A stretch of DNA of 64,000 nucleotides, from positions 1 to 64,000 of the forward strand of contig NW_021836291.1 in assembly GCF_006345805.1 (NCBI RefSeq). Reading direction: 5' to 3'. Numbering within the stretch: position 1 is the first letter of the stretch; every line of letters begins with the position of its first letter. Positions 7,391 through 55,299 of this stretch are shown here, piece after piece. A program made the translations under genes and the position numbers. Under the pieces are notes generated by a model that saw nothing but the letters and a program-made list of their open reading frames with translations, did not search any database and was not told where the DNA came from. The stretch is from Octopus sinensis. Lineage: Eukaryota.

Positions 7391-8401
7391 TATTATTATT
7401 ATTTAAGCCAAATAAAATCACCTTCTTAATCATTAACTAACACGTTCAGGTGATTCCAACACTTCTCAACAGTCGAGCCATCTTTTCACGATGTTCCGAC
7501 CGTGACCCCACACACTTTCTGTATGTACGGTGAATGGTTTGTGGTCCATTTCCACGATCCCCCCCATTTGCCTCTACGAGAGACTCCAGTGTTCTATGGA
7601 CAATTTCCCTATCGGTATGGTCCTTCAGAAGGTTGATGGATCTTTCTTGAATTTTTTCGATTTTTAGCCGATTCGTTGCCGCCAGGTTACAGCCCCAATC
7701 AGCACATGCATAGCCTATTGTTGGCTCGATATACTGCTTGTAAAGGGTCTCTACCCCTGGCGGATGAGTTCTCCCACAGTTCCAAAGGAAGGCTTTTACA
7801 AAATTGATCTTCTTTATACAGGTTGACACGATCGATTCTACGTGAGGTGAAAAACAGAGGAAAGTATCGAGCGTTACTCCCAATATCTTCTGAGTTTTCT
7901 TTTGTGGTATTGGAATTCCGTTCAACGTGACATCAATAGTTTTCGTCCCCATCTTCCTATTTTTCGTGAATAGAGTGACTGCCGACTTTTTGGAACATGC
8001 ATGTAGTCTGTTTTCATATAGCCATCCATATAAGTCGTCCAGTATTCTTTGTAGTCTCTCCTTCGCGTATTCGACATTTACATCCCTAGATGCGACAACT
8101 ATGTCATCGGCATAGGAGAGTAGTATGTCATTATTATCCATAGGAACCGGGAGATCATTCAGAAACAAGTTGAAGAGGGTCGGGGATAAAGGAGAACCCT
8201 GGGGTACACCATTGGGCAATAAGCGTGATCTTGAACTCTCGTTCCCGACGCACACTTTCCCACGACTCCGCTCAAAAAATTCGCTATCCATAGCTTCATA
8301 GGTGTAGGAATTTGTGTACCAAATATCTTTTGAATCTTCCTTGGGACTGAGTCAAACGCTTTTTGAATGTCGATAGTGCATACAATTGATTTCTCCTGCA
8401 A
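7391..8401 (-). mobile_element. 5'-truncated APE-type LINE: RT domain to 3' end with (TAA)n tail
   Basis: IDIQKAFDSV (frameshift) GVPQGSPLSPTLFNLFLNDLP...SYADD; stop at 7446; tattattatt tail at ~7391-7402; second copy of the 3' end at 48420-48668. Confidence 0.9.
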
Positions 8402-8447: not shown

Positions 8448-9215
<768 letters not shown>

Positions 9216-12537: not shown

Positions 12538-14078
12538 AGCAATCTTACGTTTCTATGCCAACATTATTATTTATTTATTTATTAAAGACCAAACACGGGC
12601 AAAGCCAGTTAATTATAGTTATTCCCGTGATCGCCGATCCAAACGAGGGAGATCCTTCTGAAAGGTTCGATCCTGCCTGCATGATCGGCCTGAGACGACG
12701 ATGTCCCAAAGTCTGAGAGCTAAAGGTTTTTTTTCGGTAGGCATTAAGTGCCTCCTGAGCGTTGCCATATCCGAATGGAATTTTTCCAACTGACATGGTG
12801 GACCCCATAACGCCACGCTAAGACCGGAAGGTAAGAGATCCCCATTTCCAACTGTGTCGTGCCAGAAGTACTCGTTGCCTCACGGGCAGGGGAACGATAA
12901 CGAGAATAGGCCCCAGGATGAAAACTGTCCTCCTTCGGAATCGAACTCACGACTGTCCAAATTCATTATCCATAGCTTAGTCTTCAGCCAACGGGGCTGA
13001 GTCATAGGGGTTCTCGCAATAAATAAAATTAAAAATGATTTGGAATTAGTCTAAATATAATTTAAACTATTTGGAAAATCCGATCATAGGCGTGTACTGG
13101 CAAAGATAGAAGAAAAGCGTTAAGTCCCAGGGGCAAAGACGCAGTGTGCGTTGCCGCGAACAATGGCCAGACCGATGCGCTGGCGGAACCGAATTCTAAA
13201 TATTAAACAGACTTTAGGTAGATAGTCCAGTTACTACGTGATTTTGACTCTGTTGACCTACTTCATTGAGCGTAGACTCAAATTGCCTTCCAGGTTTATC
13301 AATAAACTGTGATAGACGTGTTGAGTGTTTATCTAACTACAACGAATTCGATGTGGACGGGGTTAAGCTAGAAATGGATATATTAAGTCTTTTTCATTTC
13401 CTGTCTAAAACCGCCGAGTAAAGTCTCGCTGACAAATTCGAACCTGTTCGAGTAAAACAAGTTATAGAACAAACCATCGACCTTTGTCACCTCAATGCAT
13501 ATCCGAGATCATCGTGGCAAACAGGGCAGCCTCAATATCTAAAATCAGTGCATCTTCGGCTTTCCTTTTTATCGACAAGTTCAGCATCCGAAATATTCTC
13601 AACAAAAACGGAATTTCTTTAAACCGTGCTGGAGCTCATCAAGAACTAGTTTCAGGTCAATTCATGAACATACTGGTTCTGGAATTCTGGTTCTAAAATT
13701 CTATAAATTTTGAATAAAAATAGGCTTGTATTCAATGAAGCAAGTCCCCTACGCTTACTTACAAACACAGTCTCTGCCATCTGACACCTCCTAAGAATGT
13801 TAAAAAGTGAAGGTCTAAATTAGGATTGTTTTATTAAAGAGAGTAACCAATCCAACAGTTGACTTAGAGATGCATCGTTTCCACTGATCAGCCGCATATT
13901 CAAGGATATAGTTGTTGGAAATAAATTAGTTATTAAGAATACCAAGATAGGACGCCTCGGTTTTTTAATGCATTCTGCTACGATCAGCAACTGCTTGGGG
14001 ACTCCCCTCCATAAATAAATTATTAATTCTATTATTTGTAAGTATAAAAAATAAACATATAAAACTGGATATTCTGTG

Positions 14079-14876
14079 ATGATGTACTTTATTTGGTTGT
14101 GTTATGTCCAATTATCAAATGCTCGTTCTGCTGTTTGGGCTGTGAATTGTGGTGGTCCCGAATTTACTGACAGTCATGGAATTACATATTCGGAAGACTT
14201 TCTGACTGAGGGCGTGGCTTCTGATTATGGACTTCAATATTACATACATCGAGCGAATGATGACTCTTTTCTTTACCAAACAGAACGATACTCTTTTGAG
14301 GACTTTGCCTACACCGTTCCTCTCTCTGAAGACGGAGACTATGTTGTCGTTTTAAAATTTTCGGAAGTATATTTCAGGGAAAGTGATCAGAAGGTAAATG
14401 TTCAATTCCTCAATTGAGGTGTTTGATGTCGCCATAAACGGACACGTGGTTATTAGCCGACTCGACATTTTCCGCGAGGTCGGATTTGCCACTGCCCATG
14501 ACGTGGCTGTCGAATTCTCCATCAGAGATTCCACCCTCTATTTCGACGATGCCTCATTTTTGTATGACGGCGAGTTATTAATTCAGTTCATCAGTGTCCT
14601 CACTATTCATTACATGTTTAGTTGTTCGTGGATAACCCCAAAATAAATGCAATTTCTATAATCCGCGGCACTCTTTCCGACGTCCCTCCACTTTCCCCAC
14701 TTCCAAGAAATGTTCCTGAGAGCAATCCCTTGCCGCATGTTGAGAGAGAGGAGTATTCCTATGATCCCGACTTTACTGCGGAAGGTAATCCAAACATGGT
14801 CAGATCGTTTGTAATTCTTGCTTTCACTGTAATTTTCGGACTCGTCTGTCTTGTCCTGATTATCAGAAATTTATGA
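14079..14876 (+). CDS. MLEC: Malectin
   Basis: AVNCGGPEFTDSHGITY...LYQTERY...VVLKFSEVYF..QK|VFDVAINGHVVISRLDIF.EVG..TAHD...DNPKINA plus C-terminal TM helix; introns 14394-14418 (25 nt, ends GAG) and 14596-14621 (26 nt). Confidence 0.95.
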
Positions 14877-19259: not shown

Positions 19260-20565
19260 TCAAGTATGAGTGAGATTTTCATATTCAGGAATAGCATAAT
19301 GATGAAGACAGTACAACCCCAAATAGCACACAAATAACCAACAAGTAGACAAAGCGTGTCGATCGAACATGCCCGAATAACGATAGTGATGCATGTAAAA
19401 CAGCATTTCACAAAGAGCAGTGAGTGACAAAAAGACTCCCAAGGCAGCCGAGGAGTGATAAATGAACCTGCCGAATTGGCATTTGACCCACATGAGGAGG
19501 ATTATGTAGCAGGACACGGCGGCGTTCTGGAAAAAGTCTGAAATGATCAACTCCATGCCAATGAAGGAGAGGAGGACGGCGAAGGCTCCCCCGAATGCGG
19601 AGACAGTTCTGTTGAACTCGAGGCGATGAATGAGATTGACTAGAGTAGAGACATGACCGAACCAATGAGAATATAAATCTGGTTGTACGCAAAGTTGAGG
19701 AGGAATAATATGGAAATAGTGAACACAGAGTACGTCAGCAGAGAGAGGGCTAATAACTCGACACCCGACTGCTTCACTCCCGAGAAGCTGTAAGACACAC
19801 CAGTGAGCACGTTTCGGGCATATCCTCAAGACTGTTGCATGAAATAAGACCAGTAAAGTTGTGGGAGTATTTGGAGAGTGCTTTGAGGACGAGGATATCC
19901 GCCCCAATCAGGCCGAGGATGTACTGCCCGTAGTCCTCCCCCCCGATGAGTGAACTGTCATCTGCTGTGTTGGGCAATCAATACTAATGGAGATATGATG
20001 GACTGCAATCCCGAACATGTCCCTCAGTCGGGGGGACAGTCTCAGAAGGGAGTAGTCCCCGCTGTACTCGATTATCACTCCACTGCAGGGCAATGTCTCC
20101 CCCTCCAATGGACCTATCATATTCATTCCACACAACATTGATCAGACGACACATTTTCCATTCTTGGGAAAAAGTTGGCCAACACTCCCCCAATCTGATT
20201 GAATTCCTGCAATGAACAGACCAGTCTACTTGGAGGTAGCTGCCATGTAGCGAGCAGTTGGCATGCCCAACCTGAATCCTTATTATCTCGTCCATCAACA
20301 CCTCCCGTGGACGACTCCCCAGGAAGTGGGCGGACACATTCGCCACCAGCACGTGCGACTTAATCAACACCACGAGACTCAAAATGGCCTGTCAAACTGT
20401 GATAGTCTTATGAACCAGAAGGAGGGTCACCGTTTCAGATACTCTCCGGTAGAACGCGGACACTTTAACGTTATAGAGATGCCACAGGTATGGGAATAAG
20501 GAATCGAATAAGCCCTCTGGATTAAATGCTTGGTTTGCAATATTTTCATTATTCAAATTGGACAT
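19260..20565 (-). CDS. TMEM259: Membralin
   Basis: LFDSLF..LWHLY...FYRRVSE; IIEYSGDYSLLRLS; LLSFIGMELIISDFFQN...YIILLMW...YMHHYRYSG...ALSTCWLF...LHHYAIP match membralin; many mini-introns. Confidence 0.88.
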
Positions 20566-21200: not shown

Positions 21201-21312
21201 TTTTTAATGTAAATTTTAAAATCTTGGTTTTTAAAATTAGGGTTTTCTAAAAGTTAGGGCTTAATAGGCGTTTTTTTAGAGTTAGGGCTGGCTTTTAAAA
21301 ATAAGGCTCAGT

Positions 21313-21714
21313 CAGGGCTGGCGGTGTTATTAGGAAATGTATACGGTACCAAGTTCTATCGAACGCTATAGTGTCTATTTTCAACAATTCCGTTGTAAAA
21401 AACGAAATTCCATCTCTTTGGAAAAAATCACGTATCATCCCGTTAATCAAACCGAACAAACCGGCTGGCATTCCAAGCTCATACCGCCCAATCTCTCTTT
21501 TGTGCACGCTATCTAAAATCCTCGAAAGACTAATCCTTTCACGAGTCTCGAAGCACTTACCAACATCCCACACCCAACATGGCTTCAAACCACTGCACTC
21601 AACAACCACTCACTTAACAACGCTTTCCCAGTTCGTCCTGGACGGCTTCAATGAGAAGAGGCCCCCTAAACGAACAGTTCTAGCTTCCATCGACATATCT
21701 AAAGCTTCCCAGAG
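21313..21714 (+). mobile_element. Internal RT fragment of an I/Jockey-like LINE flanked by a 10-bp direct repeat
   Basis: IFNNS...WKKSRIIPLIKPNKP...SYRPISLLCTLSKILERLI...QHGFKPLHSTT...IDISKA; aaggctcagt at 21303-21312 and 21715-21724. Confidence 0.85.
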
Positions 21715-22329
21715 AAGGCTCAGTAAACGTTACGGGTGCTTTTGGTTGGGTTTGGTAAATTTAGGATTTCATTTTTTAAAAAATTGTTGGATAATTTTAA
21801 GTTTAAAGATAGCTTTAAAATGGAACTTGAGAAAATCAAGACTTATTTTATATGGATAGAATTGATTAAACGGACGGTGACATTATTTAAATTTGTATTT
21901 AAAAATTGACCAGATTGACATAAACAAACTTTTTATAAAAACTTTGTTGGACATTTTTTTGATTAATCATTATTTTTAGACTAAAATCTAACTTTGACTT
22001 GAAATTGACTTTATTGATTTGTTTTGCCTTACTAATCAATAATTTTATTGAAAAAACACGGTTCGGGTTTGGAGCTGAAATGTTCCGGAAAATAAAGGAG
22101 CAAGTCGATTCTGAAAGACCAGTGAATGGATGTCATATGTATGTGCTCTTCGGGTTGGGTAATCGGCATTTTCTTGTTGCATTCCCAATTTGGATATTGC
22201 TTCGATGAAGTTTATTATTATTAAAAGCACTCCCGAGAAGTCATAAAACTAATTAAGCTTCCCTTGTGCCGCGTGAACAACAATACTGTTCCACAACCTT
22301 CTCCAGGTGCCTCTCCTCTTTGCCAATTT

Positions 22330-23136: not shown

Positions 23137-23743
23137 ATGCACCCCGGATTGACGAGTGACGCCGTCAACAGTGATACACCACTCCGGAACCGGATGTCTA
23201 TCCCAGCTACAGCTAAAAAGAAAAAACAGATGGAGCAGAGCAGATACACTTCGTTTGGATTCTCTTCGTTTGGAATCTCTTCGTTTGGATTAGCTAGTTT
23301 CTTAATAACATGTTCTCTTTCTGTCTTGATCTTATGTGACCGCACGTGCGGAAATATAACTATTATGTTTCTACGGCAGTTGCCGATAATAATAATAATT
23401 GCTTGTTGTTTAATTGACTTTGCTTGTTTGATTAATGGGTGAGAGGTGTTGGGAAATTTGCTCACTTTTGAAAGAAGAGTATCTCAGAAAATGTTCCATT
23501 CAAACCCACATTCTCCGCAATGATTGTGGGTCTGACTTGACTGAATGTCAGGTGAGGAATCTGGCGAGAAAGTGTTCCAAATTGGACTTGGAGGATTGTT
23601 ATGGAATTATAAGGGAGTATGAGGAGGAAGTGATGGCATATCGGTCGTCGGAAGAGTTATTCTCCGAGCTATTAACTCTGATCAAGAAGAGCAGCAAGAA
23701 GAAATCACTCAAACATGTAACCAACAGAGTATCCCCTCTTTGA
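23137..23743 (+). CDS. Hypothetical protein (hydrophobic ORF plus adjacent charged ORF); structure unresolved
   Basis: ORF 23137-23442 has TM-like segments and a 15-bp triplication (ttcgtttggaWtctc); ORF 23435-23743 is exon-like in composition; no family recognised. Confidence 0.3.
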
Positions 23744-23778: not shown

Positions 23779-24496
23779 TTAGCAAGTGAGAGCGAAAGTG
23801 ACAACGTCGAACAATTCCTTGGGAAATGCTTTCTCGAATTCGTAGTTGAGCAGAGTGAGTCCTGCTTCCTGGAAAATGTCACAGAACGTGTTGAAAGAAC
23901 GAATAGCCGAGTTGTCCTCTTCGAGGAAGCAGTCGTCAGTGTAGTCCAGTCCGGCAGTGTTGTCCTTCACAATGACCACTCCACTCCCCGAGACAGTCCC
24001 GCACTCCACTCGCAACCCTCGTTTTATTCTCCTGAGAAAGCGGACGAAATCCCTTCTTAGCAAGTGGCCGGACACCCACTGCACCCACACAATGTCATAA
24101 CAATTCTCTTCCGGGGAAAAGTCTCGCAAGTTTGTGCAGAACGTTCTGATGACCCTCCTATAGTCCTGTTCTCCAATGTACAGTCGGGAATTGGAAATAA
24201 AGTCGGGAGTCATGTCGACGAGATCCACTTTCTGGCACATTGGCAGGAGGACGTGTTTGGAGACTCGTCCAATGCCTGCCCCACAGTCGAGTGCGTAGGA
24301 GAAGTAGTCATTGGGGAGGCATTCCTTATTCTCGAGACACTCAATGAACCGAATTGAGCTTTGGTGGTCGGTGTGTGCAATGAAGCCATACCCCCCCAAC
24401 ATGGACTCGATTGTGGGTTCTTTCGACTGGTAGTATTTCTTTATTTTGTCGTAGTGGGGGCTCACAACCTAACAGGAACACAACCCACCATACCAT
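23779..24496 (-). CDS. NTMT1: Alpha-N-terminal protein methyltransferase
   Basis: PTIESMLGGY...ALDCGAGIGRVSKHVL...YDIVWVQWVSGHL...VIVKDN...FPKELFDV..FAL; start inferred as an ATG-only exon (24494-24496) plus a 25-nt GTATGG..AG intron (24469-24493). Confidence 0.93.
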
Positions 24497-24501
24497 CACA
24501 A

Positions 24502-25857
24502 TTAATTAATTAATATAGTTTTTATATAAGCAATAACATCTCCATTTCCCAATATCCCTCGATGATCAATGCCGGGGAAAGCCTTGAGGGTGGCCCACGG
24601 ATGTCGTTGCTTACACTCCCGGAGACTGGAGAGGAGGACAGTGCCATCCCCGTCCGAGTAGTTCATGGTGGGGGAAGCAGGGAAGTGAGTCCAGGACTCG
24701 TATCTGTCCATGTCCGAATGCCTGTTCACCTGAGAGTAGCCAGCGTGTCTATTCCCTGCGAGTAAACACAATGCAGTTGGATATCCGAGGGGACCCTAAT
24801 CTGAGGGAGGACTGTCCTGTACAGTCGGAACATGTCCAGCATGGCATCCTTGTTGGGATCCTCCAGTTTCTAGAATGAGTGGTCGACGTACATTGATGAC
24901 CTCCACGTAATCATAGCTCGTATTGCCCACCCATACGGAGTCCTCGGTCGGGAAGAGTGCAAATGTGCTGGGAAATGTCCGGAGTGTGTCTCTGAATAAC
25001 TCGTCTTCCTTCAAATGGGCAAAGTTGACCCCTGAGTAATTGGGAAAGCAATACCAATGAGGACCCCTCTCAACGAAAGAGTGGACCCGTTGAAGGGGCC
25101 GGACACACTGATGAGTCGCCGAATATACTTCCTTCTCCACTCCACCGACCGACTCTCCAAAAAACGAGCAGAAAGCAAGCAGCCGTAGCTGTGGGCGAGG
25201 AGTGTGACGGGCCCAGAAGAGGAGTAACTAATCTCGACCAGGCGGGCCAGTCGGACAAACAATTCATCAAAGTTATCTAATGTGAGTACTCAGTCTAAAC
25301 CCAGTCCCAGTCGAAAGTCGAAGGGCACGCCGAGAATGTTGTCATTCCTCACGTAGGGGAGGACAGGCTTGTGGGAGACCAGTCCAGTTATGAACTGCGA
25401 GAAGTACCCCGTGAAAAAGTGGGCTGTCCTCATTGGGGAGGGAATACCAATGTACGAATCCCCCAGGAACTCCACCGAGTCCACATCCCCCAACTTCCCA
25501 GTCTTGATTTCCACGCCTGACTGATTGACGGGCAGTTGGAGGGATCTCGACCAGAGCAGTCTACAAGTCAGGCGAGTGGGATGCCTCAAGTTGTGGTGGT
25601 AGCATTTATCCACGATTGGCAGGAATGCGTAGAGGGACAGCCAGAGGAGGTAATAGTGCTTGGTCTTGGTTCTGCAGATACTGTACTTGTGGCCCGTCTG
25701 ATTCAGTTGGGCGTACAATTTGGAGCCCCCATCCCCGGGAACTATCACTGAGGAGGGGGAGGTCACCCAAGAAGAGGGGAGACAGTGTCCCATTCTGTCT
25801 TCCCGGCCTGCCCGAGGCTAAGGCAACCAAAAGTGTGGAAATTATGATAACAATCAT
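24502..25857 (-). CDS. PLA2G15: Lysosomal phospholipase A2 / LCAT-like lipase
   Basis: Signal peptide MIVIIISTLLVALA; LFLVPGDGGSKLYA; GVPFDFR; VTLLAHSYG (nucleophile); GDGTVLLSSL; GIDHRGIL; many mini-introns. Confidence 0.9.
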
Positions 25858-25889: not shown

Positions 25890-26954
25890 GGTACATATGT
25901 AGTAGTTGGCGGCCACTTTTTAGCGAATTTTAAAAAAACTATATTTTTTCCAGAGGAATCATCCCAAAAAAAAAGTGTGTCGCAACGGACACCAAATGAC
26001 TTTAAACATTGGCAGCTCTCCGGCTTGGAATTGCTACAGAAGGGGCTGTCGAAGTAAATCGAGTCTAAAAACTGGTATTTATATCATTAAAACTCAACAG
26101 GAACGTGGTTAGCAGGAACCAAAGTACCATTCGAAGATATAATCCGGTTTGTCTACCTGTGGGCAAAAAATATATCTTCTATGGAGATATGCATGGAAAA
26201 TCTTGGTGGGCTTCACATACAACCGTGGACTGGTCAATGTACATGCGTGAAATTTGCATGCTATCATTGACATCTCGTCAGAGATCCAAAATAGGTGTGC
26301 GTAAATTTATAATATAATAGGCGGTGAAGGAATGATTGTGGAAATTGACGAAAGTCATTTTTCAAAAAGGAAATACAACAGAGGCAGAATGTTGCCTGAG
26401 CAATGGGTTTTCGGCGGAATCTGCAGAGAAACGAACCAATGCTTCTTAGAAGCAATACCTGACAGAACAATGAAGACCCTTACGAAGGCTATTCTTGAGA
26501 ATGTAGAAGAAGGCACCATTCTCATATCAGACTGCTGGAAGGGTTATTCAACAAAAGATCTTCAGGATGCAGGATATCAGCACCTGCAAGTGAATCACAG
26601 ATATTGTTTTGTTGATCCAACTACGGGTGCACACACCCAACATATTGAAAGGTTTCCAATTATATAATTATTCCTTAGAATGTGGAGTAGCGCCAAATGG
26701 CGTAATAGAAAACAAAGGGGAACAGTCAGACAACACCTTAATAGTTATTTTACGGAGTTCATTTGGCGACAGACAGCCAAAAAGAAAGAATTTGAAACAA
26801 TCATGGAGTGCATTAAAAAAAATAATTAATAATTTTGTATAAAAATAATTAATTTTTTTATAGTAATATTATTTAAAAAAGGTAATTATTCACCAAAAAA
26901 TATAGTTTTTTTAAAATTCGCTAAAAAGTGGCCGCCAACTACTACATATGTACC
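25890..26954 (+). mobile_element. Merlin (IS1016/ISXO2-like) DNA transposon with ~60-bp TIRs, 7-bp TSD and intron-containing transposase
   Basis: TIR GGTACATATGTAGTAGTTGGCGGCCAC... at both ends; TGATTAC on both flanks; VEIDES...WVFGG...SDCWKGY...VNH...HTQHIER|MWS...YFTEFIWR; introns 26075-26100, 26295-26320, 26652-26678; one frameshift at ~26205; stop 26829. Confidence 0.93.
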
Positions 26955-27564: not shown

Positions 27565-28949
27565 TCAAAGTGAGGAGGCTGCAATGGAGAACTGATAGGG
27601 GTTGAGTCCACTAGTGAATATCAACTCCTCCAATCCCTCCACTCGATGGTCTACCAATCAAGCAAGACTGGCCAACATGGACTACTCCTAATCCACCCAG
27701 CCCGCACAAAGTAGAGCCAACAATTGAACACCTCCTTCCTCGAGTAGACCCCCACTTCAATTGGAACAAATGGTTCGAGGCTGGCAAATCCCTGTTCATA
27801 TCACCAGTCAACCACCTCCTCTGTCAGCAAGTACTTTGGAAGGTAATTGTCCTTGCCCGTGGGGGTGATTGCATCCACTGAGAACACACAACTCATCCCC
27901 ACTGTCGGCCTCCTCACCAAATTAATGAAATGTCTTATCAACACAAATTTGTTGGCGTCTCTCTACCAACTGACCAGGAGATAGCACCTTCCAAAATGGT
28001 CGACTCCCAATCCGGTGATCCCGCCCATCCCACAAGGCATTAACCCCGTCCACACACACCATCAACCGGAATCTGCTGGAATGAGGGGAAAGTACTGCTT
28101 CCCAGCCTGCAGCCGCAATTCCTGGAGGACTGCCTCAACACAGTCGCAGGCGTGGATGGGTCGGGCGATTCCCTGCTCGACCACCTCGAGGAGAGGACAT
28201 CCCTCAGCACTCGTCTCCCGTCTACTCCACACTCGAGTCTTCTCTGTCCGAATCTGACAGTCAAATTGCAACAAAACATCGAGTTTGGTCAGAACTCGTC
28301 TGTTCTGTGTTCTGAAATGGGTAAGCCACTCCACAGCCTGTGCTGGCTGGGGGATGTTGAGGGGGTCACATTCCAACTGGGAGGGGGACTGATTGCTGTA
28401 CAACCAGGAGAGGGCTGTCATGTTAGTCAGAGAGTACGTTTGTGCAAATGGACGACCACCCAGTCGTTGTGGATGCAGTAGTGGAGAACGTGGGCAATGG
28501 ACATGCTCTTTCCACTCCCATTTGGCCCGTCTGGAATAATAATGGGAGTGATAACACAAAATGAATGACATGGGGAGGACTGACCGAGTCACATGTCTGA
28601 TCACCTGCAGGGAATATGGTCGAATCATGATTGGACATTCCCCCAGTGTTCGAGACTGTCCAGTCACACAACACAGTCACCAATTCGAGGTGGTATTTGT
28701 GGACTCCCCTCGGCACTATTTCTGTCATTCTTTCTGGGCTTGTCGTGTAGAAGAGTCCCACGTGAGACTCGTCGTGATCAGACTATGTAAATGACGACTG
28801 TCTACTGGGTTGTTTGTAGGACACATCACTGAAGGGTATTTTTGGAGGTTTTCGAGGTCCTGGCTTTGTATGTGACCTTGTAGTGTGGACAGCCTCCCAG
28901 TAGTCACACGGTTTTGTAATTTTTTGAAAAACCCCAAAAGACCAATCAT
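27565..28949 (-). CDS. DAP3: Mitochondrial ribosomal protein S29 / death-associated protein 3
   Basis: P-loop GPNGSGKSMSIAHVLHYC; RVWSRRETSAEGCPLLEVVEQGIAR; YLPKYLL...GFASLEPFVPIEV; many mini-introns. Confidence 0.9.
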
Positions 28950-30240: not shown

Positions 30241-31007
30241 TTATGTTGGCTTTGCTTCTATTCTTATTTCCAAATGTGCGAATATTAAATGACGAATTAG
30301 CATTTTTCTGGACTGACTGCCACCGAGAAGCAACAGTTCCTCGATTCGCACAATCAGCGTCGAGCAATGGTCAACCCTTCTGCCACAAATATGCAGAGAA
30401 TGGTAAAAACAACTTGCACTGATCGTCAAGAAATGGGACCAGGGTTTGGAGGACATTGCGTTCAGTTCTGCCAGAACGTGTGTATTCGAACACGTGAACT
30501 CCGGAGAAAACATCCACTTTTCGACAAGTTTATTGTGAGAGTTGAGATTGCACAGAAAAGCCTGCTCCTGAAAAGATTGTATCCTCGTTCTACAATGAAT
30601 ACAAGAACTACAACTATTCTACTAATCAATGTGAAGCAAACAAGATGTGTGGTCACTACACACAAGTACTGATTATGTAATGGTAGGTCGTCTGGGCAAA
30701 ATCAGACAAACTGGGCTGTGCTACATATTTGTGTGAAAACATAGTCATTTCTGGCAAATACCATCAGGGGTATCTCACTTTCTGCAATTACTTGAGCTTG
30801 TTTGTTATTTTCTCCATTATGGGCACAGTGGGAACTACAAAGGCGTCCGACCATACATTCCTGGGCCCTCCTGCACTCAGTGTCCTTCTACTGCTCCATA
30901 TTGCATAGATCAACTCTGTTCAGGTTACTTTATCATTAGCCTTTTAGATAGTCGGGATAACAAGTCTTCTTTCAGAAATGCAGGAAGGTCCACAAATTGG
31001 TTATTCA
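30241..31007 (-). CDS. Hypothetical multi-exon gene (unassigned)
   Basis: Chain of exon-like frames (MNNQFVDLPAFLKEDLLSRLSKR; LIYAIWSSRR...; HVLAELNAMSSKPWSHFL) separated by short GT-AG segments. Confidence 0.35.
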
Positions 31008-38046: not shown

Positions 38047-39765
38047 ATGGTTAAGTCTCAATCCAATGCATTCGACAAAACTACCAATAACAACGGTAAA
38101 ACTACCAACTAATGCATAATATACCACAATATATATTACCCCCACATAGTTCACTCGCACCCCACCACACAAAACTACTCGGAGCCAAAAAGTCTGCACG
38201 ACTGGGGAGTCTCCGAGGCAGTTTCTGATGTCTTTCAGCCCTTTTTTAACTCAGGTTTAAAATCTCGGACAAAACCACTCAGGGAGGCTGAAATTCTCCG
38301 AATTCGACGCTCGGGCGATCGACGCCTTCAAAAGTCTAAGTCAGAGGGACGCGGAGGACATTTCGGCGTGTTTCGAAGCCAGCGACCTCTCGCACATCTC
38401 GAACAAGAGTGCCCACCTGTGCACGTCCATCCGGCTCGTGCGGGACAGGAGAAAGAACAACGTCAGTCTGAGCAACACGGAGGTGTTCAAACCCGACGAG
38501 CAGAAGATGGAGGCCATCATCCGACGGACTGGCTACCCCTACGAACGCACGTCCGGCCAGCGGAAATATGGCCCGCCTCCCAACATGACGGACATCCCGG
38601 CCGCCAACGGACACGAGATCTACATTGGGTCGATCCCCTACTCGGTGTGTGAGGACACGTTGATCCCCATGATGGAGAAATGTGGCACTATCTACGACCT
38701 CCGAATGATGGTGGATGCCGCCACTGGACGGAACAAGGGATTCTGTTTTGTGACCTTCGTGGAGGACGACGCCGTGGACATTGCAGTCAAGAAATACAAC
38801 GGAGTGGAATTGAAGGCGGGAATGAAGATACGAGTGAATCCTTCCATCCCTAACCTCAAATTGTCGTTGTCCAATCTGCCTATGAATAAGGAGGCGAGTG
38901 AGTTGATGGAGGAGTTCAATAAGTTGTTGGATGGAGTGCTGAATGTGGAGTTGACGGGGCCTGGTTGTTGTACAATCCACTTTGATCGACACAAGAATGC
39001 TTCCTCCAGCAAAAGAAAGTTGTTTACTGGGCGAGTGAGGCCGTTCGACCAGTTGGTGGGGGTTGACTGGTTTGTGGTGAATGAGGAGAACGGGGAGGAG
39101 GATGTCAAGGTGTTGTTTGTGAGGAATATTGACGCGGACATGTCTGATGCTGAATATTCGGATATTTTCAGCAGATTTGGCAGTGTTATGCGGATAAATC
39201 GTTTTACTAATCATTTATTCGTTCATTATGTTGACCGAAAGGCAGCAGAGAAGGCACTCGGCAAAATGGATAAGAAGGTGGTGTTTGTCGACATGTCCTA
39301 GTTTGTGGGCAGTCGGGAAATTGAGGTGTCCTTCGCTCGATGTCAAAACAAGAAGGAACGACGTGACAAACAGCAGTCTCGGCACTCCGGGTGTGTGTCT
39401 TATTTAATCCCAGTGTCTCTTATTTCGACAATTCAATGTTTTTGGGGGGGAATTCCAATGGCTTCTACCAGATTCCCTCATTCTTCCAAGCGGATGGATC
39501 AGTGTCGACGATTCCAATGGCCCCGATTGCGGGGATAATTCCTGACTGTTATTACTTCCCTTCCGATCCCTACTGGATGTACGACCCTGCCACTAATGGG
39601 TCGACTGTCCCCCTGATTACTCACTTTTATGACTGTTACGGTGTGCCTCACCAATATGTGTATCCTCCATTCCTCGTCAGTGGGGATGTGCCTGTTAATG
39701 GGGAGAGAGACGGGACTGTCGAGGAGTCTGGACTCAATCCAGGTTGTGTGGTCTTGTTAGTTTAG
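38047..39765 (+). CDS. SYNCRIP: hnRNP Q/R (SYNCRIP-like) RNA-binding protein
   Basis: NURR domain (FDARAIDAF...SDLSHISNKSAHLC), TSGQRKYGPP, three RRMs (IYIGSIP, RNKGFCFVTF, VKVLFVRN), Tyr/Pro-rich tail; mini-introns; 3' end approximate. Confidence 0.92.
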
Positions 39766-40280
39766 ATGGGTGTAATGGGGGAGTTGGGAATGTTGATGAG
39801 GTGGCCAACGTGGTGTAAAATTGAGACCATTTTTAATGCGATAATCATCTTAATTAATTAATTAATTTGCTATCAATGATAGTAATAAAATATGTAGATT
39901 TATTTTGTTGTTATGTTCTATTTATTCCTGATGATCGACGAATTTAATATTACCAATGTTATTTAAGTTGTGACAAGAATCTTCACATCGTTCGATATTT
40001 CTCGCATTGTTTACTATTACGCTCTATTTCAATATGCCGGATTCTTGGCGAGGATTTTTAAAGACAACTATTTGTATTTAGACCGATTGATCAGTGAATT
40101 AGCAAAATCTAGTGTTTAAAACATGGTCTCTCCATTTTTACATATCTTATTCATAAGGATTTGAATGATTACAGTTTATAAATTATGCTAATAGAACAAG
40201 ATTATTTTGAACATTATTGAACATTATGCCAAAGTCACGAGCCATTCATCTACTTTCATTCAGAATGCTCAGCGGAAATT

Positions 40281-41994: not shown

Positions 41995-43348
41995 TTGAAG
42001 GTTGTGGAGGACCTCATCATGTGAGTCGAGGACTTTCTTGTCGTTCATTTTAACAAAAACGCAGAAAATAATTTTTTTAATTTTTTAGCTTGAAGGTTTT
42101 GGGGGACCACATCATGTGAGTCGAGGACTTTCTTGTTGTTCATTTTTACAAAAACGCAGAAAATAATTTTTTTTAATTTTTTGGCTTGAAGGTTTTGGGG
42201 GACCACATCATGTGAGTCGAGGACTTTCTTGTTGTTCATTTTTACAAAAACGCAGAAAATAATTTTTTTTAATTTTTTGGCTTGAAGGTTTTGGGGGACC
42301 ACATCATGTGAGTCGAGGACTTTCTTGTTGTTCATTTTTACAAAAACGCAGAAAATAATTTTTTTAATTTTTTAGCTTGAAGGTTTTGGGGGACCACATC
42401 ATGTGAGTCGAGGACTTTCTTGTTGTTCATTTTTACAAAAACGCAGAAAATAATTTTTTTTTTTAATTTTTTGGCTTGAAGGTTTTGGGGGACCACATCA
42501 TGTGAGTCGAGGACTTTCTTGTTGTTCATTTTTACAAAAACGCAGAAAATAATTTTTTTAATTTTTTAGCTTGAAGGTTTTGGGGGACCACATCATGTGA
42601 GTCGAGGACTTTCTTGTTGTTCATTTTTACAAAAACGCAGAAAATAATTTTTTTTAATTTTTTGGCTTGAAGGTTTTGGGGGACCACATCATGTGAGTCG
42701 AGGACTTTCTTGTTGTTCATTTTTACAAAAACGCAGAAAATATTTTTTTTAATTTTTTGGCTTGAAGGTTTTGGGGGACCACATCATGTGAGTCGAGGAC
42801 TTTCTTGTTGTTCATTTTAACAAAAACGCAGAAAATATTTTTTTTAATTTTTTTGCTTGAAGGTTTTGGGGGACCACATCATGTGAGTCGAGGACTTTCT
42901 TGTTGTTCATTTTAACAAAAACGCAGAAAATAATTTTTTTTAATTTTTTGGCTTGAAGGTTTTGGGGGACCACATCATGTGAGTCGAGGACTTTCTTGTT
43001 GTTCATTTTTACAAAAACGCAGAAAATAATTTTTTTTAATTTTTTGGCTTGAAGTTTTGGGGGACCACATCATGTGAGTCGAGGACTTTCTTGTTGTTCA
43101 TTTTAACAAAAACGCAGAAAATAATTTTTTTTAATTTTTTGGCTTGAAGGTTTTGGGGGACCACATCATGTGAGTCGAGGACTTTCTTGTTGTTCATTTT
43201 AACAAAAACGCAGAAAATAATTTTTTTAATTTTTTAGCTTGAAGGTTTTGGGGGACCACATCATGTGAGTCGAGGACTTTCTTGTTGTTCATTTTAAAAA
43301 AACGCAGAAAATTGACTTGAAGGTTTTGGGGGACCTCATCATCGAGGA
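41995..43348. repeat. Minisatellite, ~96-bp unit x ~14, inside the Helitron
   Basis: catcatgtgagtcgagg recurs 14 times from 42015 to 43259; units differ mainly in T-run length. Confidence 0.97.
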
Positions 43349-44789: not shown

Positions 44790-45600
44790 TTACTGCTGAA
44801 TGAAAAGTGTCGCTATTAGAACAACGACAACTTTAATGAGACCGACTCCTTTAATATTTTTATTTAACAGATATACTTGCTACATATTTGGAGTTTTCTT
44901 CTGTTACTTTAGTCGTCATTTCACTTGGCTTTGCATTGAGGTCGAATGATTTGTTCTCAGTAATATAATTTTGCGTAGTTGTGACTGTCTTTGTGCTATT
45001 TTCTTTATTGACAACTTTCGTGAGACCAACGGCTTCAATATTTTAATTTAACAGATATACTTGTTACATATTTGGAGTTTTCTTCTTTTAGTTTAGTCGT
45101 CATTTCACTTGGCTTTGCATTGAGGTCGAATGATTTGTTCTCAATAATATAATTTTGCGTAGTTGTGACTGTCTTTGTGCTATTTTCTTTATTGACAACT
45201 TTCGTGAGACCAACGGCTTCAATATTTTAATTTAACAGATATACTTGTTACATATTTGGAGTTTTCTTCTTTTAGTTTAGTCGTCATTTCACTTGGCTTT
45301 GCATTGAGGTCGAATGATTTGTTCTCAATAATATAATTTTGCGTAGTTGTGACTGTCTTTGTGCTATTTTCTTTATTGACTGATTCGGCAGCCATGGCCT
45401 CAAGTTTCTCATCCCATTTCTTTGAAGTATATTTATGCCATATTACCATTTTTAGCATATCAGCAGCTAAAGGGTTTGCGATTGATCGATATTTGTTGTG
45501 TGCATCCAAAAAATTTTTTCGGTCCTCGGGTGAAACGAGAAACTAAAACCATGAATAAACGAATTACAATATTGTGAAATAACATCAGAAAAGCAAACAT
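44790..45600 (-). CDS. Secreted/GPI-anchored protein: truncated CAP (SCP) N-terminus + 3 Thr-rich repeats + hydrophobic tail (224 aa)
   Basis: Exons 45600-45568, 45542-45447, 45419-45245, 45216-45061, 45032-44877, 44848-44790 give 675 nt in frame; FLDAHNKYRSIANPLAADMLKM|KWDEKLEAMA is the CAP start; tail VGLIKVVVVLIATLFIQQ*. Confidence 0.75.
44829..45378. repeat. 184-bp tandem repeat x3 (156-nt exon + 28-nt intron unit)
   Basis: acaactttcgtgagacc at 45011 and 45195; degenerate copy at ~44828. Confidence 0.95.
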
Positions 45601-46475: not shown

Positions 46476-48400
46476 TCCAACTCGGGGTCGGCGTGCCTGG
46501 AGGATGTGAATCTGCTGTTCATGCTATCCGCACTTCCTCAGAAGCGTGCAGGAAATCACAATGTCCAAACATTCTGATCAAGCTTGACATCAGAAATGCA
46601 ATGACAGAGTCTTAGAGGCCTGCTCTGAGTATTGTCCTTCCTTATTCGGGCTCGCTTTCCAATCATACGGCCAACCATCTTCCCTTATCTTTGATTCCGA
46701 CACTATCCCGTCTGCTTCGGGAGTCCAGCAGGGAGACCCTCTGGGGCCACTTCTTTTCTGTCTTGGAATCTCCGAGGTGACCAAGCTTCTATCTTCTCCA
46801 TTAAATCTCTGGTATCTCGACGACGCCACTCTCGGTGGCCCTCCGGACATTGTCCTGCAGGACATAATTAAAATCATCCCGGCTCTGGAGAAAATCGGCC
46901 TCATTTTAAATTCCTCCAAATGTGAAATTTCCAACCTCGGATGCTCGCAATCTATTTTCGAAGACGCTGTTTCCTCTTTCTGCGATCTTATCCCGGGAGT
47001 TCAATCTACTCCCATTGACGAACTTTTTATCCTCGGAGCCCCGGTAGCTGGCAACTCTATCGATGTGGCCCTACGCAAAAAAGAACTTTTCCTCGAAGAA
47101 GCTTTTGATCGTATCAGACAGCTGGACTCGCACACTGCATTATTCCTCCTACGGAATTGCTTTTCGATCCAAAAGCTCTCCTATCTGCTTCGCTCTTCTC
47201 CGTGTTTTGATTTTTCAGAGAGGCTTTCAGCCATTGACCTTCTTATTAGCACTTGCACTCAGAACGTATGCAATTCCCCTTTCGACGACATGGGTTGGAG
47301 ACAGGCAATCCTACCGTTATCTTTTGGAGGGCTCGGCATCCGTTCATGTTCCGACCTATCGTTGCCTGCTTACCTCTCTTCCGTCTCCGCGAGCCACACA
47401 CTTGTCATGGAAATTCTACGCTCCTTCCCTGAATTTTCCTCGGACACAAATGTGGCTCATTTCAGCGAAGTCTGGAGAGAACAAGGTCTTGACTTTCCGG
47501 AAGAGCGAATGTCTCAACGAGCCTGGGATCGAATTAGATGCAAGCAAACTTTTAATCTGCTCTCGAGTCGTCCAACCAGCACCGCCGCGCTTGCCTTCTG
47601 TCGGCAGCATCCCCGGCTAGCGGAGCTTGGCTTTGTGCATTCCCGAACGCCCCATCTGGCACTCTCCTTGACGATGAAGCGGTAAGGATCGGAGTCTCTC
47701 TGCGACTCGGACTAAGGCAATGTGTCCCGCACACGTGCCGCTGTGGCTGCACTGTTGACCCTTTCGGTCTGCACCCTTTATCGTGCAAGAGGAGTGCCGG
47801 ACGTTTCCCGAGGCACTCTGCTATGAATGACATCATACGGAGGGCCCTCGACTCGGCGGGATTTCCTTCGGTTCTCGAACCACCGGGCCTTGATCGCGGC
47901 GACGGGAAACGTCCTGACGGGATGACCCTATTCCCCTTTGAAGGCGGAAAAGGCCTCGTATGGGACGCAACCTGCTGCGACACCTTTTCTGCTTCTCACT
48001 TAACTTCGTGTGCTCTGGAAGCCAAATCCGCAGCTAAGAAGGCTGAAGATTTAAAGCTTTTAAAATATTCTGCCCTCTCGGAGAGGTTTTCCGTGGTGCC
48101 GATCGCGGCGGAGACGTCGGGTGCTCTCGGTCCAAAAACCGAAAAGTTCCTTCGCAAGCTCGGAGCCAAAATCTCAATGCGCACCCATGATCCTCGAGAG
48201 GCGAACTGGCTAATGCAACGGCTCTCGATTACCATTATCCGGGGAAACAGTTTGGCAATCCGCCAGGCTACATATCCACCATAAACATAATACAGTCTAA
48301 CCCCGGGGTGGGGCACCAAAGTGCCCCAAAAACCGGGGGTGCCCTTCCAAACAGGGGTCTAGTTCAAACTATTGAATTATAGTTCATTTAACTTAAATTT
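46476..48400 (+). mobile_element. CRE-clade non-LTR retrotransposon, RT + CCHC + RLE, 5'-truncated
   Basis: QLGVGVPGGCE...KLDIRNA; GVQQGDPLGPLLF; WYLDD; GGLGIR; CRCG..VD..GLH.LSC; KRPDG...LVWDATC...KY..L...PIAAETSG...QRLSI.I.RGN; frameshift ~47565; stop 48284. Confidence 0.92.
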
Positions 48401-49074: not shown

Positions 49075-49495
49075 CATACTAAATAGGATTAACACCAAAC
49101 TAAGTGGGACTAGCAGAAAACTAAATGGGATTAGCAGAAACTAAGTAGGATTAACCTTCAAACTAAGTGGGACTAGCAGAAAACTAAATGGGATTAGCAG
49201 AAACTAAGTAGGATTAACCTTCAAACTAAGTGGAATTAACGTCAAACTAAATGGGATTAGCAGAAAACTAAGTGGGATTAACGTCAAACTAAGTGGGATT
49301 AGCAGAAAACTAAGTAGGATTAACCTTCAAACTAAGTGGGAGTAATTTGCGTGGGAACAGCTGTTCCATTCGGCTTGCTGGCAGATTAATTTCTGATTAA
49401 TTTAACTTTCCTATTCTTCAAAAAAAGCTATAATCTTTAAAAAAAAAGTGGGAGTAACATCAAACTAAGTGGGATTAACGTCAAACTAAGTGGAT
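49075..49495. repeat. Left subterminal array of ~22-bp units (aactaagtgggattagcagaa variants)
   Basis: Seen directly; mirrored in inverted orientation at 50565-50730. Confidence 0.9.
49346..49445 (+). mobile_element. 100-bp retroposed insertion with A-rich tail and 12-bp TSD
   Basis: aagtgggagtaa at 49334-49345 and 49446-49457; the insert ends in an A-run and contains the palindrome ggaacagctgttcc. Confidence 0.7.
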
Positions 49496-50744
49496 TACGT
49501 TTATTATAAACATTATATTTCGACGCAGCAAATAAAAATGCCACGTAAATCATTGGAAGAGAAAAATCAAATGCATAGAAGTAGAATACATTTAATTTCA
49601 GCTGCAGAATCAGGTAGAGATTGGAAAAAAACAGCACTTGAACTCAATATCTCGAGAACAACAACATATCGTTGGATAAGGGATGGAGTTAAACCTGACA
49701 CGAGAGGTGGAAATTATAGAAAAAAGTTTGACAAAAAACATGTCGACTTTTTTATATCATGCATTGAAGACGATAGCACACTTACCCTTCATGGAATAAA
49801 AAGAAAATTTAAATTAGTTTTTCCAAAATTATCAATATCAAAATCAAGTATCGCTCGACATCTCGATCTAAGTTTGTATACATTAAAGAAAGTGAGATTC
49901 GAGCCGGAAAAAGCTAATTGTGAAATTCACAAAATCAAGAGAAAGGAATTTGTTGAATCGGAAAACAGACAAATTTGCTTTATGGATGAATCAAACTTTA
50001 ATCTCTATATCAGCAGGACAGAAGGAAGATCGCTAAAGGGAACAAGATGCACTACTCTAGCGGCTGCATCAAAAGGGTCGAATGTACATATAATTGGATG
50101 CATCTCAAATCTAGGACTCATTTACTATGAAATCCGAAGGGGAGCTTTTAAAAAAGAGCAGGCTTGTGATTGGATGAAAATTTGTTTGAGGCAAGCACGG
50201 ATTAAACATGGTGGTCCAGTTATTATAGTGTTGGACAATCCACCAGCTCACGTGGTATCGAAGAAGTTTTTCGATTGGAAAAATTTAATGATTTTCACAT
50301 TCTTCGTCTCGGTCCGTACAGCCCAATGCTTAACCCCATCGAAAATGTATGGTCAAAAGTAAAAGCTCACGTGAAAAGAGACATCGCTTCTAAAAAAACC
50401 AAATTTTATTCCAACAAGGAGAAGGCTTGTCAATTAAAGAGCATCGAAACGGATACTTGAACAAATAATTGTAGATAGAATGATAGAATGAAACAAATAT
50501 TGCCGACACACTAAATATGAAATTAAAAAAAAAATTTTTTTGTGTTAATTCAATTTAGTTTGCTATTAATCCCATATTGTTTGGTATTAATCTCACTTAG
50601 TTTGATGTTAATCCCATTTAGTTTTATGCTAATCCCACTGAGTTTTCTGCTAATCCCACTTAGTTTGATGTTAATCCCACTTAGTTTTCTGCTAATCCCA
50701 CTTAGTTTTGGTGTTAATCCCATTTAGTATGGGAAATGGTATCA

Positions 50745-51896: not shown

Positions 51897-52701
51897 TCAC
51901 AACGAATGCAAGTATTTATTGATAAATGCACTCCCAGCAGAGTCAATCACACTCACCCTCTCAGCTCGATGACTTCTCTGTCGCGACAAAAATTGTTCCT
52001 CCAAGTTAAGTCGACTGAGAACAGCCCTACTCCTGTTGACGTCGACGAGTATCCTCAGAACAGACATCTCCTCTTCTATCCTCCTTTCACTCAAATCACG
52101 ACTAATCCGCAGATACCGCTGTTCGTACACGTCCTCACAATACTCGCTCGTCTTCTCACTCATCACATTCTCCACACTCCACTCATTTTTCGAGTAGGGA
52201 ATACACAACTCACGCCTTTCCTCCAATTCGGCCGGATGATGACTCTCATGCTTATTTTGGAGGTGGACAAGTCGGTCTTGTGCCGCACTGAGCACACCAA
52301 GTGACTTGTCCAGTCGGCTGATGGTCGACTGAATGTCCATTTCGACATCCGCATAGACATTGTCCTCCAATAGACAGGGCCTTCTGAAGTAGTTGGAGTT
52401 ATCCACCACTCCGAGACTCCGTTTGAATGGTGTGTTGGCAGATCTTGTGGAAATTAGAAAAGTGAGTACAATTCGTCCCATTCGTTGGGCTTTTCCCACT
52501 GTGAACAGACGGTGACGTAGTTGTAGTAATAGAGGACTCCACGAGAACTCTTGTGGAGAGACCAGTTGCCGGACACGTCCAGTGCTGACTTGAGAGCCTA
52601 AAGTAGTCTTGTGACACAACCTCGGTCTTCCGGAGCAATTCAGTCGACTTTCCGTGCTTGGAAGTTGATTTTATTGGCCCTGACTTATTCATTAACTTCA
52701 T
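51897..52701 (-). CDS. WAC: WW-domain adaptor with coiled coil, WAC-like
   Basis: WSLHKSSRGVLYYYNYVTVCSQWEKPNEW (WW domain) after intron 52598-52620; intron 52444-52469; C-terminal EMSVLRILVDVNRSRAVLSRLNLEEQFLSRQ coiled coil; 3' end uncertain. Confidence 0.75.
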
Positions 52702-54096: not shown

Positions 54097-55299
54097 ATGG
54101 TGCTCGTGTGATTTCTTTATATTGTTATTATTACTTTCTCATATAATTTACCTCTATAGTCCTGTCCACTCATCAACGTGTACAACTTGAAGGGAGAACG
54201 ATCCGAATCAACAGTAGCCTTACCAGCAGTATTCCAAACTCAAATCAGGCCTGACATTGTTTCCAAAGTGGCCGATGAAATGCGGAAGAACACCCGCCAG
54301 CCATATGCAGTCTCCAAGACAGCCGGAGTGAAGGTCACCGCCCACTCCTGGGGAACTGGGCGAGCCATGTCCAGGATTCCTCGGGTTGTCGGGTCGGGGA
54401 CTGGTCGAGCCAGTCAAGGAGCATATGGAAATATGTGTCGAGGTGGCCACATGTTCGGAGGGACCAAAATATTCCGTCGATGGTACAGAAAAATCAATCT
54501 CCGACAAAAAAGATTTGCCATTTGTTCTGCCATCGCTGCCTCGGGAGTGTCCTCGTTGGTTATGGCCAAAGGTTAGTCCGCGGGAGGCAGTTTAGGCCAC
54601 CGAGTGGAGCAAGTGCCCGAATTCCCGCTGGTCCTGGGAGACGACGTGGAGAGTTTGACCAAAACGAAGGACGCGGTCTCTGCCATGAGAAATGTGAAGG
54701 CATATGTGGACGTGGAGAAAGTGGTGGACACCAAAAGACTGAGACCTGGACGGGGCAAAATGAGGAATCGACGACATGTGCTCAAAAAGGGCCCGTTAGT
54801 TATCTACAAGGAAGATAACGGGATTACAAGAGCCTTCAGGAATATTCCTGGTTTTCCGTGTTTTTTTATTTTGTAGGAGTGGACTTGTTGCCGGTGTCTC
54901 AGCTCAATCTGAGAGTATTCGCTCCTGGTGGTCACGTGGGGAGATTTGTGATATGGACTGCGGGGGCTATTAGTAGTTTGGATGCTCTCTATGGGACGTG
55001 GTCTACGCCTTCTCTCTGCAAGGTCGATTGGAACCTCCCCCAGCCGATGATGACGGTGACGGATATTCGACGTATTCTGAGGAGTGAGGAGATTCAGAAA
55101 GAAATATGTGACCCACTTAAGATGAAGAAGAGGGCCACTAGTAAGAGGGCGAGGAAGGTCAATCCTCTCAAGAGCAGAGCCCAGATGGAGAGACTCAATC
55201 CTTGCCTGATTCAAGTTCACAGGCAAGTTCCTATGGATGTTTAATTTCTCTTAACCAGTCTCGTATTTTGTCACCTTTCATTAAATATTCCTTGTAGCC
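54097..55299 (+). CDS. RPL4: 60S ribosomal protein L4
   Basis: [14 protein letters not shown]...[16 protein letters not shown]...[10 protein letters not shown]...KG|HRVEQV...[11 protein letters not shown]...[13 protein letters not shown]; introns 54572-54595 (24 nt) and ~54851-54876; last exon approximate. Confidence 0.97.

Follow-up and report, generated by a model that had tools for sequence, protein, structure and literature searches.

Two genes 5 nucleotides apart in dicyemid DNA from an octopus assembly: PLA2G15 and NTMT1 as candidate abutting transcription units

The 64,000-nucleotide (nt) stretch studied here, hereafter the window, covers positions 1 to 64,000 of a contig from the Octopus sinensis assembly (VCDQ01001777.1, GCA_006345805.1). 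On its minus strand, a gene of the PLA2G15/LCAT family ends and a gene for the methyltransferase NTMT1 begins with almost nothing in between: the stop codon TAA of the former lies at 24504-24502, the spacer TTGTG at 24501-24497 (5 nt) and the start codon ATG of the latter at 24496-24494. Judged by protein similarity and intron size, the DNA is not octopus but belongs to a dicyemid parasite. The two genes may well be separate, abutting transcription units with embedded signals, and this is the explanation that we tentatively favour. A possible embedding of regulatory signals in the neighbour's coding sequence has strong indirect support, namely a run of 15 A/T-ending codons at the end of PLA2G15 and a G+T tract at the start of NTMT1. 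The stop codon, the spacer, the ATG and a 25-nt GTATGG...AG stretch behind it had been described in an earlier note made from the letters alone, and all are present on the minus strand.

The names given to the two genes in that note are also right. The product of the upstream gene (24502..25857, minus strand, with exon joins followed through translation) matches human PLA2G15 (PDB 4x90) with E=8e-40, over residues 13-397 of 398 in the query and 6-378 of 380 in the chain, and the Pfam family LCAT (PF02450) with E=6e-30. As expected for a member of the PLA2G15/LCAT family, the match runs over the whole length, C-terminus included, and the catalytic motifs AHSYG, SDGDGTV and DH are present. Because the 4x90 alignment extends to the last residues, the TAA at 24504-24502, which is read directly, marks the natural C-terminus. 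The gene is interrupted by introns at 25300-25277 (24 nt), 25054-25032 (23 nt), 24891-24870 (22 nt) and 24729-24704 (26 nt) and, near its 5' end, by one at 25766-25748 (19 nt) or 25766-25742 (25 nt). Through either form of the latter, translation probably starts at ATG 25857, which adds the signal peptide MIVIIISTLLVALASG; an alternative ATG at 25793 leads to a protein without it. The downstream gene consists mainly of one exon of 229 codons (23779..24468, minus strand) that contains no further intron and ends with TAA at 23781-23779. Its product matches PDB 2ex4 (E=3e-47), with the DCGAGIGR motif and residues of the catalytic region aligned, and Pfam PF05891 (E=3.5e-61) over profile positions 5-218 of 218, being homologous from residue 6 onwards. 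The N-terminal motif xY..A..YW aligns with 30 homologues, in keeping with a full-length NTMT1 family member.

The position of the NTMT1 start codon is central to the argument. As already pointed out in the earlier note, an in-frame TAG at 24471-24469 closes the frame upstream, and the next in-frame ATG, at 24402 (MLGGYG), lies downstream of the conserved HYDKIKKYY. Furthermore, the sequence TTAATTAATTAA (24513-24502, minus strand), of which the PLA2G15 stop is part, provides stops in all three frames, so that none of them stays open across the junction. Between this three-frame stop and the conserved region, the only alternative to the ATG at 24496-24494 is a second ATG at 24491-24489, also seen earlier; the latter leaves a 10-nt gap from the stop and a GT..AG stretch of 20 nt. 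The first ATG has a G at -3 and a G at +4 and, in the favoured model, makes up the whole first coding exon (24494..24496). It is followed by a putative mini-intron of 25 nt, GTATGG...GTTAG (24493-24469), the length of which falls within the 21-27 nt range of the window. These are the properties of a start-codon-only first exon: an ATG with a GT donor and an in-phase AG, after which homology resumes. Its one atypical trait is that the intron lacks an internal A.

The window has 6,980 AG sites, and 0.33% of them are preceded at 22-26 nt by an ATG with a GT directly behind it; for distances of 19-30 nt and 18-70 nt the frequencies are 1.0% and 4.6%. Since ATGGT is so placed at only 0.33-1.0% of AG sites, the arrangement appears to be beyond chance. 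Among the 26 open reading frames (ORFs) that begin behind a TAG and span 90 codons or more, only NTMT1 and the ribosomal protein gene RPL4 have an ATGGT at such a distance. In RPL4, on the plus strand (54097..54159), the ATG at 54097-54099 is followed by a GT..AG intron of 60 nt (54100-54159), after which the frame resumes with SCPLINVY; for an ATGGT at 18-70 nt, as here, the chance is the 4.6% given above. The N-terminus thus becomes MSCPLINVY, exactly as long as the MAGPLVNVY of Dicyema japonicum RPL4. Two of the roughly 13 genes in the window, NTMT1 and RPL4, thus appear to have a first coding exon that consists of the ATG only. The start codon with an immediate mini-intron, as proposed in the earlier note, can probably be accepted, with RPL4 as a second case.

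The different start models were compared by means of a family hidden Markov model (HMM) built from 237 homologues. Starting from ATG 24496, the model with the 25-nt intron scores 197.5 bits, while introns of 55 nt and 67 nt from the same ATG give 193.3 and 188.1 bits; the latter two are possible, but their scores fall short by 4 and 9 bits, and their products no longer contain the near-invariant Tyr of the motif xY..A..YW. A start at the internal Met 24402 yields 182.1 bits. The 22 codons that precede this Met add 15 bits to the family score and are therefore coding, and it is they that carry the near-invariant Tyr; this internal start is ruled out on these grounds. The same evidence bears on the more general idea that NTMT1 is not made at full length, whether because translation starts at Met 24402 or at a near-cognate GTG (24465-24463), because the gene is silent or because the assembly is at fault. 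It is in line with this idea that the gene call on record (P0001, 144 aa) begins further inside the ORF, that no NTMT1 transcript turned up in the search of the protein collection and that the junction is of low complexity. However, the ORF is intact over 229 codons with all family motifs, the codons before Met 24402 carry family signal, and the contig is 482 kb long; we regard the idea as improbable. It is likely that NTMT1 starts at ATG 24496 (or 24491).

The earlier note goes slightly too far in allowing no other place for the start, as other exon structures are formally possible. An exon beginning at ATG 24545 (ATGGAGAT) could be connected by a 77-nt intron to the AG at 24461, PLA2G15 and NTMT1 could be fused in frame through a 69-nt intron at 24537-24469, or NTMT1 could have a far upstream exon. 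The first two joins are open and in frame, such longer introns contain an A, and first introns of 50-60 nt exist in the window. Nevertheless, introns of 69-77 nt are beyond the range seen in the window, and the presence of ATGGT at 25 nt would have to be a coincidence (0.3-1%). The fusion, which is the output of a gene finder, was dismissed on biological grounds. PLA2G15 is a secreted hydrolase and NTMT1 a nuclear/cytosolic methyltransferase, which, with a signal peptide in front of it, would be sent along the secretory pathway; in addition, the conserved C-terminal helix of PLA2G15 would be deleted. A different 5' exon or a fusion is thus rather unlikely.

The palindromic sequence TTAATTAATTAA occurs elsewhere in the window as well. 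With at most one mismatch there are 8 matches against 1.1 expected, comprising 24502-24513, 39850-39865 and six near-matches, and a doubled copy lies 32 nt past the stop codon of the hnRNP-Q-like gene.

The size of the proposed intron is to be viewed in the light of the source of the DNA. The RPL4 protein encoded in the window is 76% identical to that of Dicyema japonicum, while the next best match reaches 61% and Octopus vulgaris 57% (protein search). Thirty introns in the window measure 21-27 nt, the homology-confirmed ones 22-26 nt. Dicyemid spliceosomal introns are about 22-27 nt long and have a weak splice-site consensus (PMC2222250, PMC6543705, PMC2483917, PMC13644364); among animals, introns this short are found only in dicyemids and myxobolid cnidarians (PMC13644364, PMC2222250, PMC6543705). 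The combination of introns of this size and proteins closest to Dicyema is that of a dicyemid nuclear genome, and the contig is assigned to a dicyemid because its RPL4 is closest to that of D. japonicum and its introns measure 21-27 nt. On these data the DNA comes from a dicyemid that lives as a parasite in the kidney of the octopus and belongs to a species other than D. japonicum. The GC content of the window (38.6%) and the presence of reverse-transcriptase fragments fit the values of the D. japonicum genome (36.7% GC, 49% repeats; PMC6736024). In such a genome, the 25-nt mini-intron of the earlier note is of normal size (21-27 nt). Some first introns in the window are longer than the internal ones of 21-27 nt: 60 nt in RPL4 (54100-54159, plus strand), 54 nt in the hnRNP-Q-like gene (38096-38149, plus strand) and about 50 nt in DAP3 (28580-28531, minus strand), the latter two according to our own models only.

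The candidate acceptors correspond to introns of 25, 28 and 55 nt, all with the same ATG. The 28-nt intron (24488-24461, minus strand) has an A at -10 and would give a product beginning with MVCPHYDK..., and the 55-nt intron (24493-24439, minus strand) one beginning with M-KYYQ...; in the family HMM, models in which HYDKIK is retained score 4 bits better than the one with the 55-nt intron. At 23% A, nearly any intron has an internal A by chance, and the presence of an internal A in 30 of 30 introns was for this reason dropped as proof of a requirement. Published dicyemid introns are without a branch-point signature (PMC2483917). The A-less 25-nt intron is therefore unusual yet allowable.

The composition around the junction is striking. 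The last 15 codons of PLA2G15 (GNGDVIAYIKTILIN; 24505..24549, minus strand) all end in A or T, which means that the GC content at third codon positions (GC3) is 0, as compared with about 0.64-0.69 for the gene set. Ten-codon windows with a GC3 of 0 occur only in the PLA2G15 end, among 1,621 such windows from six coding sequences, and for this peptide and codon usage, 15 out of 15 A/T-ending codons have a probability of 7.7e-7. When the stop codon is included, the segment comprises 48 nt of 81% A+T within an exon of 58% GC. Because the peptide aligns with the C-terminus of human PLA2G15, this is a recoding of synonymous sites and not a recruitment of non-coding DNA. Within these codons, 30 nt upstream of the NTMT1 ATG, lies a TATAAA (24521..24526, minus strand), which may serve as a TATA box for NTMT1 and/or as a variant poly(A) hexamer for PLA2G15. 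The stop codon is followed by a 41-nt tract of 85% G+T (24461..24501, minus strand) that holds the ATG and the mini-intron and includes TGTGTTCC (24482-24475). Only 0.014% of 41-nt stretches in the window are equally rich in G+T, and the tract is a candidate GU-rich downstream element of the PLA2G15 poly(A) site. It is the overall G+T richness that is significant: neither YGTGTTYY nor TTGTGATG is enriched in the window, and both were dropped as specific signals. Metazoan poly(A) sites usually consist of a hexamer region rich in A/T with a G/U-rich tract behind it, and other genes in the window also have a hexamer and a G/T- or T-rich tract near their stops. An AATAAA in codons 10-12 of NTMT1 (24440..24445, minus strand), 57 nt past the PLA2G15 stop, is an alternative candidate poly(A) signal; it was downgraded as proof, since AATAAA is found elsewhere inside coding sequence. 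Comparable A/T motifs are present at -28 to -34 of the ATGs of UBE2A, the hnRNP-Q-like gene and membralin, and such motifs at about -30 from start codons hint at very short leaders. The stretch from 24537 to 24497 is free of ATG, and a short NTMT1 leader would consequently contain no upstream ATG.

From these features we infer the transcription start, the poly(A) site, the acceptor in use and the independence of the two transcripts as follows. The NTMT1 mRNA would begin a few bases from the PLA2G15 stop codon, directed by a minimal core promoter that would occupy the final ~45 nt of coding sequence in PLA2G15 and include the TATAAA at -30. Its leader would be very short and its first coding exon would be the ATG at 24496-24494 alone, linked to the conserved frame by a mini-intron that ends either at AG 24469 (25 nt) or at AG 24461 (28 nt). 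The PLA2G15 mRNA would be cleaved and polyadenylated at or just past its stop, with the A/T-rich stretch and the G+T tract as signals; alternatively, cleavage could take place downstream of the AATAAA at 24445. It is conceivable, but doubtful, that through synonymous recoding one and the same A/T-rich stretch both provides PLA2G15 with its poly(A) signal and serves NTMT1 as a TATA-type core promoter. If this were true, the two mRNAs would abut almost base to base, with NTMT1 being nearly leaderless and having a first exon of only AUG.

The earlier note had left two mechanisms open, stop-start reinitiation on a shared mRNA and a promoter and poly(A) site buried in the neighbouring coding exons. 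The sequence favours the buried signals, in view of the A/T-ending codons, the TATAAA at -30 and the G+T tract, and lends no positive support to reinitiation. In the latter mechanism the genes would be co-transcribed, the mini-intron would be spliced and NTMT1 would be reached by termination-reinitiation 5 nt past the PLA2G15 stop. The short distance between stop and start, the same orientation of the genes and the good context of the ATG (G at -3, G at +4) agree with this, and an independent NTMT1 promoter is itself only a candidate. However, eukaryotic ribosomes reinitiate only very inefficiently past an ORF of 398-430 codons, the length of PLA2G15, if no special elements assist them, and no stable RNA fold is found at the junction (24560-24430; z=+1.03). 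Moreover, the succession of A/T-rich and G/T-rich sequence resembles a processing or initiation site rather than a region of read-through, and the signal peptide of PLA2G15 implies that the mRNA is translated at the endoplasmic reticulum. A dicistronic mRNA therefore seems unlikely.

A third mechanism is suggested by operons without intercistronic sequence, such as the SL1-type operons (SL for spliced leader) of Caenorhabditis elegans and those of Ciona intestinalis, in which the genes run in the same direction and the poly(A) region of the first borders directly on the second (PMC12582326). PLA2G15 would then be polyadenylated at its stop, and a spliced leader joined at AG 24469 (or 24461) would supply the AUG. 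The leaders of flatworms are described as ending in an AUG that is able to serve as initiator (Cheng et al. 2006, as cited in PMC12582326; PMC9851317). The co-directional genes and the 5-nt spacer are as expected for such an operon, and the A/T hexamer region, the G/T-rich tract and the AG resemble a poly(A) site abutting a trans-splice acceptor. Furthermore, in both NTMT1 and RPL4 a phase-0 acceptor lies immediately before codon 2, and a branch point on A residues further upstream would account for the A-less 25 nt. The earlier note had excluded trans-splicing on the ground that the spacer has no AG. This is correct as far as it goes, the nearest upstream AG being 46 nt inside PLA2G15, so that there is no acceptor close to the ATG on its upstream side; but the argument is incomplete, as AG 24470-69 could accept a leader that supplies the AUG. 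What makes trans-splicing at this AG unlikely is the presence of the cis ATGGT. NTMT1 has its own ATG and GT donor, RPL4 likewise has an ATG and GT at a suitable distance, and the joint chance of this is about 1e-4 to 5e-4. Ordinary cis ATGs are also present in UBE2A, PLA2G15 and the hnRNP-Q-like gene. No dicyemid spliced leader or operon is reported in the searched literature, which likewise yielded nothing on dicyemid untranslated regions (UTRs), and Rfam and tRNA scans of the window gave no matches, hence no SL RNA gene there; this covers 64 kb and the searched literature and is not proof of absence. The other genes in the window are far apart, with spacers of at least 0.5 kb, co-directional ones included, which does not indicate a general packing into operons. 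Such an operon is very improbable here, and its bolder variant, in which dicyemid operons in general are resolved by a flatworm-like leader that donates the AUG, has a very slight probability at most.

Several points weigh against two abutting transcription units with embedded signals, the explanation that we favour. All 30 other introns have an A at 3-9 nt from their 3' end, while the 25-nt candidate has no internal A. A/T-rich DNA commonly contains TATA-like and poly(A)-like motifs, and the recoding towards A/T fits a poly(A) signal equally well as a promoter. Read-through from an active gene would interfere with a promoter located at its end. As the junction is a low-complexity sequence, a misassembly is possible. 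Finally, the protein search with NTMT1 found no relative of more than 41% identity beyond the truncated call of the window itself, the sole dicyemid RPL4 in the protein collection is the UniRef/nr entry of D. japonicum, with no contig on record, and the collection contains no transcript-derived dicyemid proteins for NTMT1 or RPL4.

In ribosomal protein genes of microsporidia and nucleomorphs, introns occur immediately past the ATG. The junction is reminiscent of these compact genomes (as in Encephalitozoon cuniculi and Antonospora locustae among the microsporidia) in that the spacer is too short for UTRs or a promoter, so that transcripts must begin or end in the neighbour. Very short 5' leaders, as proposed for NTMT1, and tiny introns at the 5' end are further similarities (PMC3629993). 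In contrast, the dicyemid genome that hosts the gene pair is not compact: about 13 genes are present in 64 kb, with retrotransposon fragments, and repeats make up 49% of the D. japonicum genome (PMC6736024). Genome-wide compaction is not seen in the window, where spacers elsewhere measure 0.5 kb or more and the intergenic regions contain transposon fragments; here it is one exceptional animal pair and not a genome-wide habit. As compared with other start-codon-only first exons, NTMT1, like RPL4, has the ATG followed by GT and an acceptor that joins codon 2, but its intron of 25 nt is G+T-rich and A-less, and its exon is situated 5 nt from the neighbour's stop. Dicistronic genes that operate through reinitiation or internal entry exist in animals, for example Drosophila stoned and Adh/Adhr and mammalian GDF1/CERS1 and SNURF-SNRPN. 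They have in common with the present pair two ORFs on the same strand with a very short gap. However, PLA2G15 and NTMT1 are functionally unrelated and act in different compartments, and a shared mRNA would here be only hypothetical. Nothing on the organisation of dicyemid transcription units has been published in the searched literature.

The remaining genes of the window are located at 8561-9168 (minus), 14055-14646 (plus), 19260-20565 (minus), 27565-28728 (minus), 38047-39818 (plus), 51897-52692 (minus), 59097-59588 (plus), 60243-60848 (minus) and 60998-61664 (minus), and all of these except 59097-59588 were examined with Pfam. They include ArfGAP, malectin, membralin, DAP3/MRPS29, an hnRNP-Q-like RRM protein, a WW-domain protein and a LAP1-like protein (the latter two below the Pfam threshold) and MRPL9. 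The gene at 59097-59588 we take to be UBE2A/B from its resemblance to the human sequence only. Mini-introns are present in all of these genes except the intronless LAP1-like one, and the 5' ends of several models are provisional. Transposon-derived ORFs are found between the genes at 7449-8351 (minus), 21305-21856 (plus), 46521-48284 (plus), 26305-26664 (plus) and 49490-50359 (plus). Among them are reverse-transcriptase fragments, a transposase-like ORF and, immediately upstream of PLA2G15, a DDE_Tnp_IS1595 domain; Pfam was run on two of these ORFs. An ORF at 42048-42371 (minus), in a region of 31% GC, has about 30 codons directly duplicated, with KIKKIIFCVFVKMNNKKVLDSHDVVPQN occurring twice, and is probably a tandem repeat rather than a gene. 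The ORFs at 30301-30669 (plus) and 45222-45542 (minus) contain CAP/SCP-like sequence (LDSHNQRRAMVNP... and FLDAHNKYRSIANP...), named by eye, and may be fragments of secreted-protein genes. An ORF of 102 codons at 23435-23743 (plus) is convergent with NTMT1, with stop codons 35 nt apart. It is doubtful as a third packed gene, having no Pfam family and only two weak matches (E ~1e-4) among 1.8 billion proteins.

For annotation, the locus illustrates several pitfalls: standard gene callers report only 144 aa of NTMT1, both genes are fused when a splice-aware search admits longer introns, and a dicyemid contig of 482 kb (482,653 bp, of which the window is the first 64 kb) is filed under Octopus sinensis. 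In a broader sense, it indicates that a gene-sparse, repeat-rich animal genome can hold two genes 5 nt apart, with recoded last codons in the upstream one. The locus thus offers a natural test case for the minimal size of promoters and poly(A) sites in animals, and for the efficiency with which start-codon-only exons with 25-nt introns are spliced.

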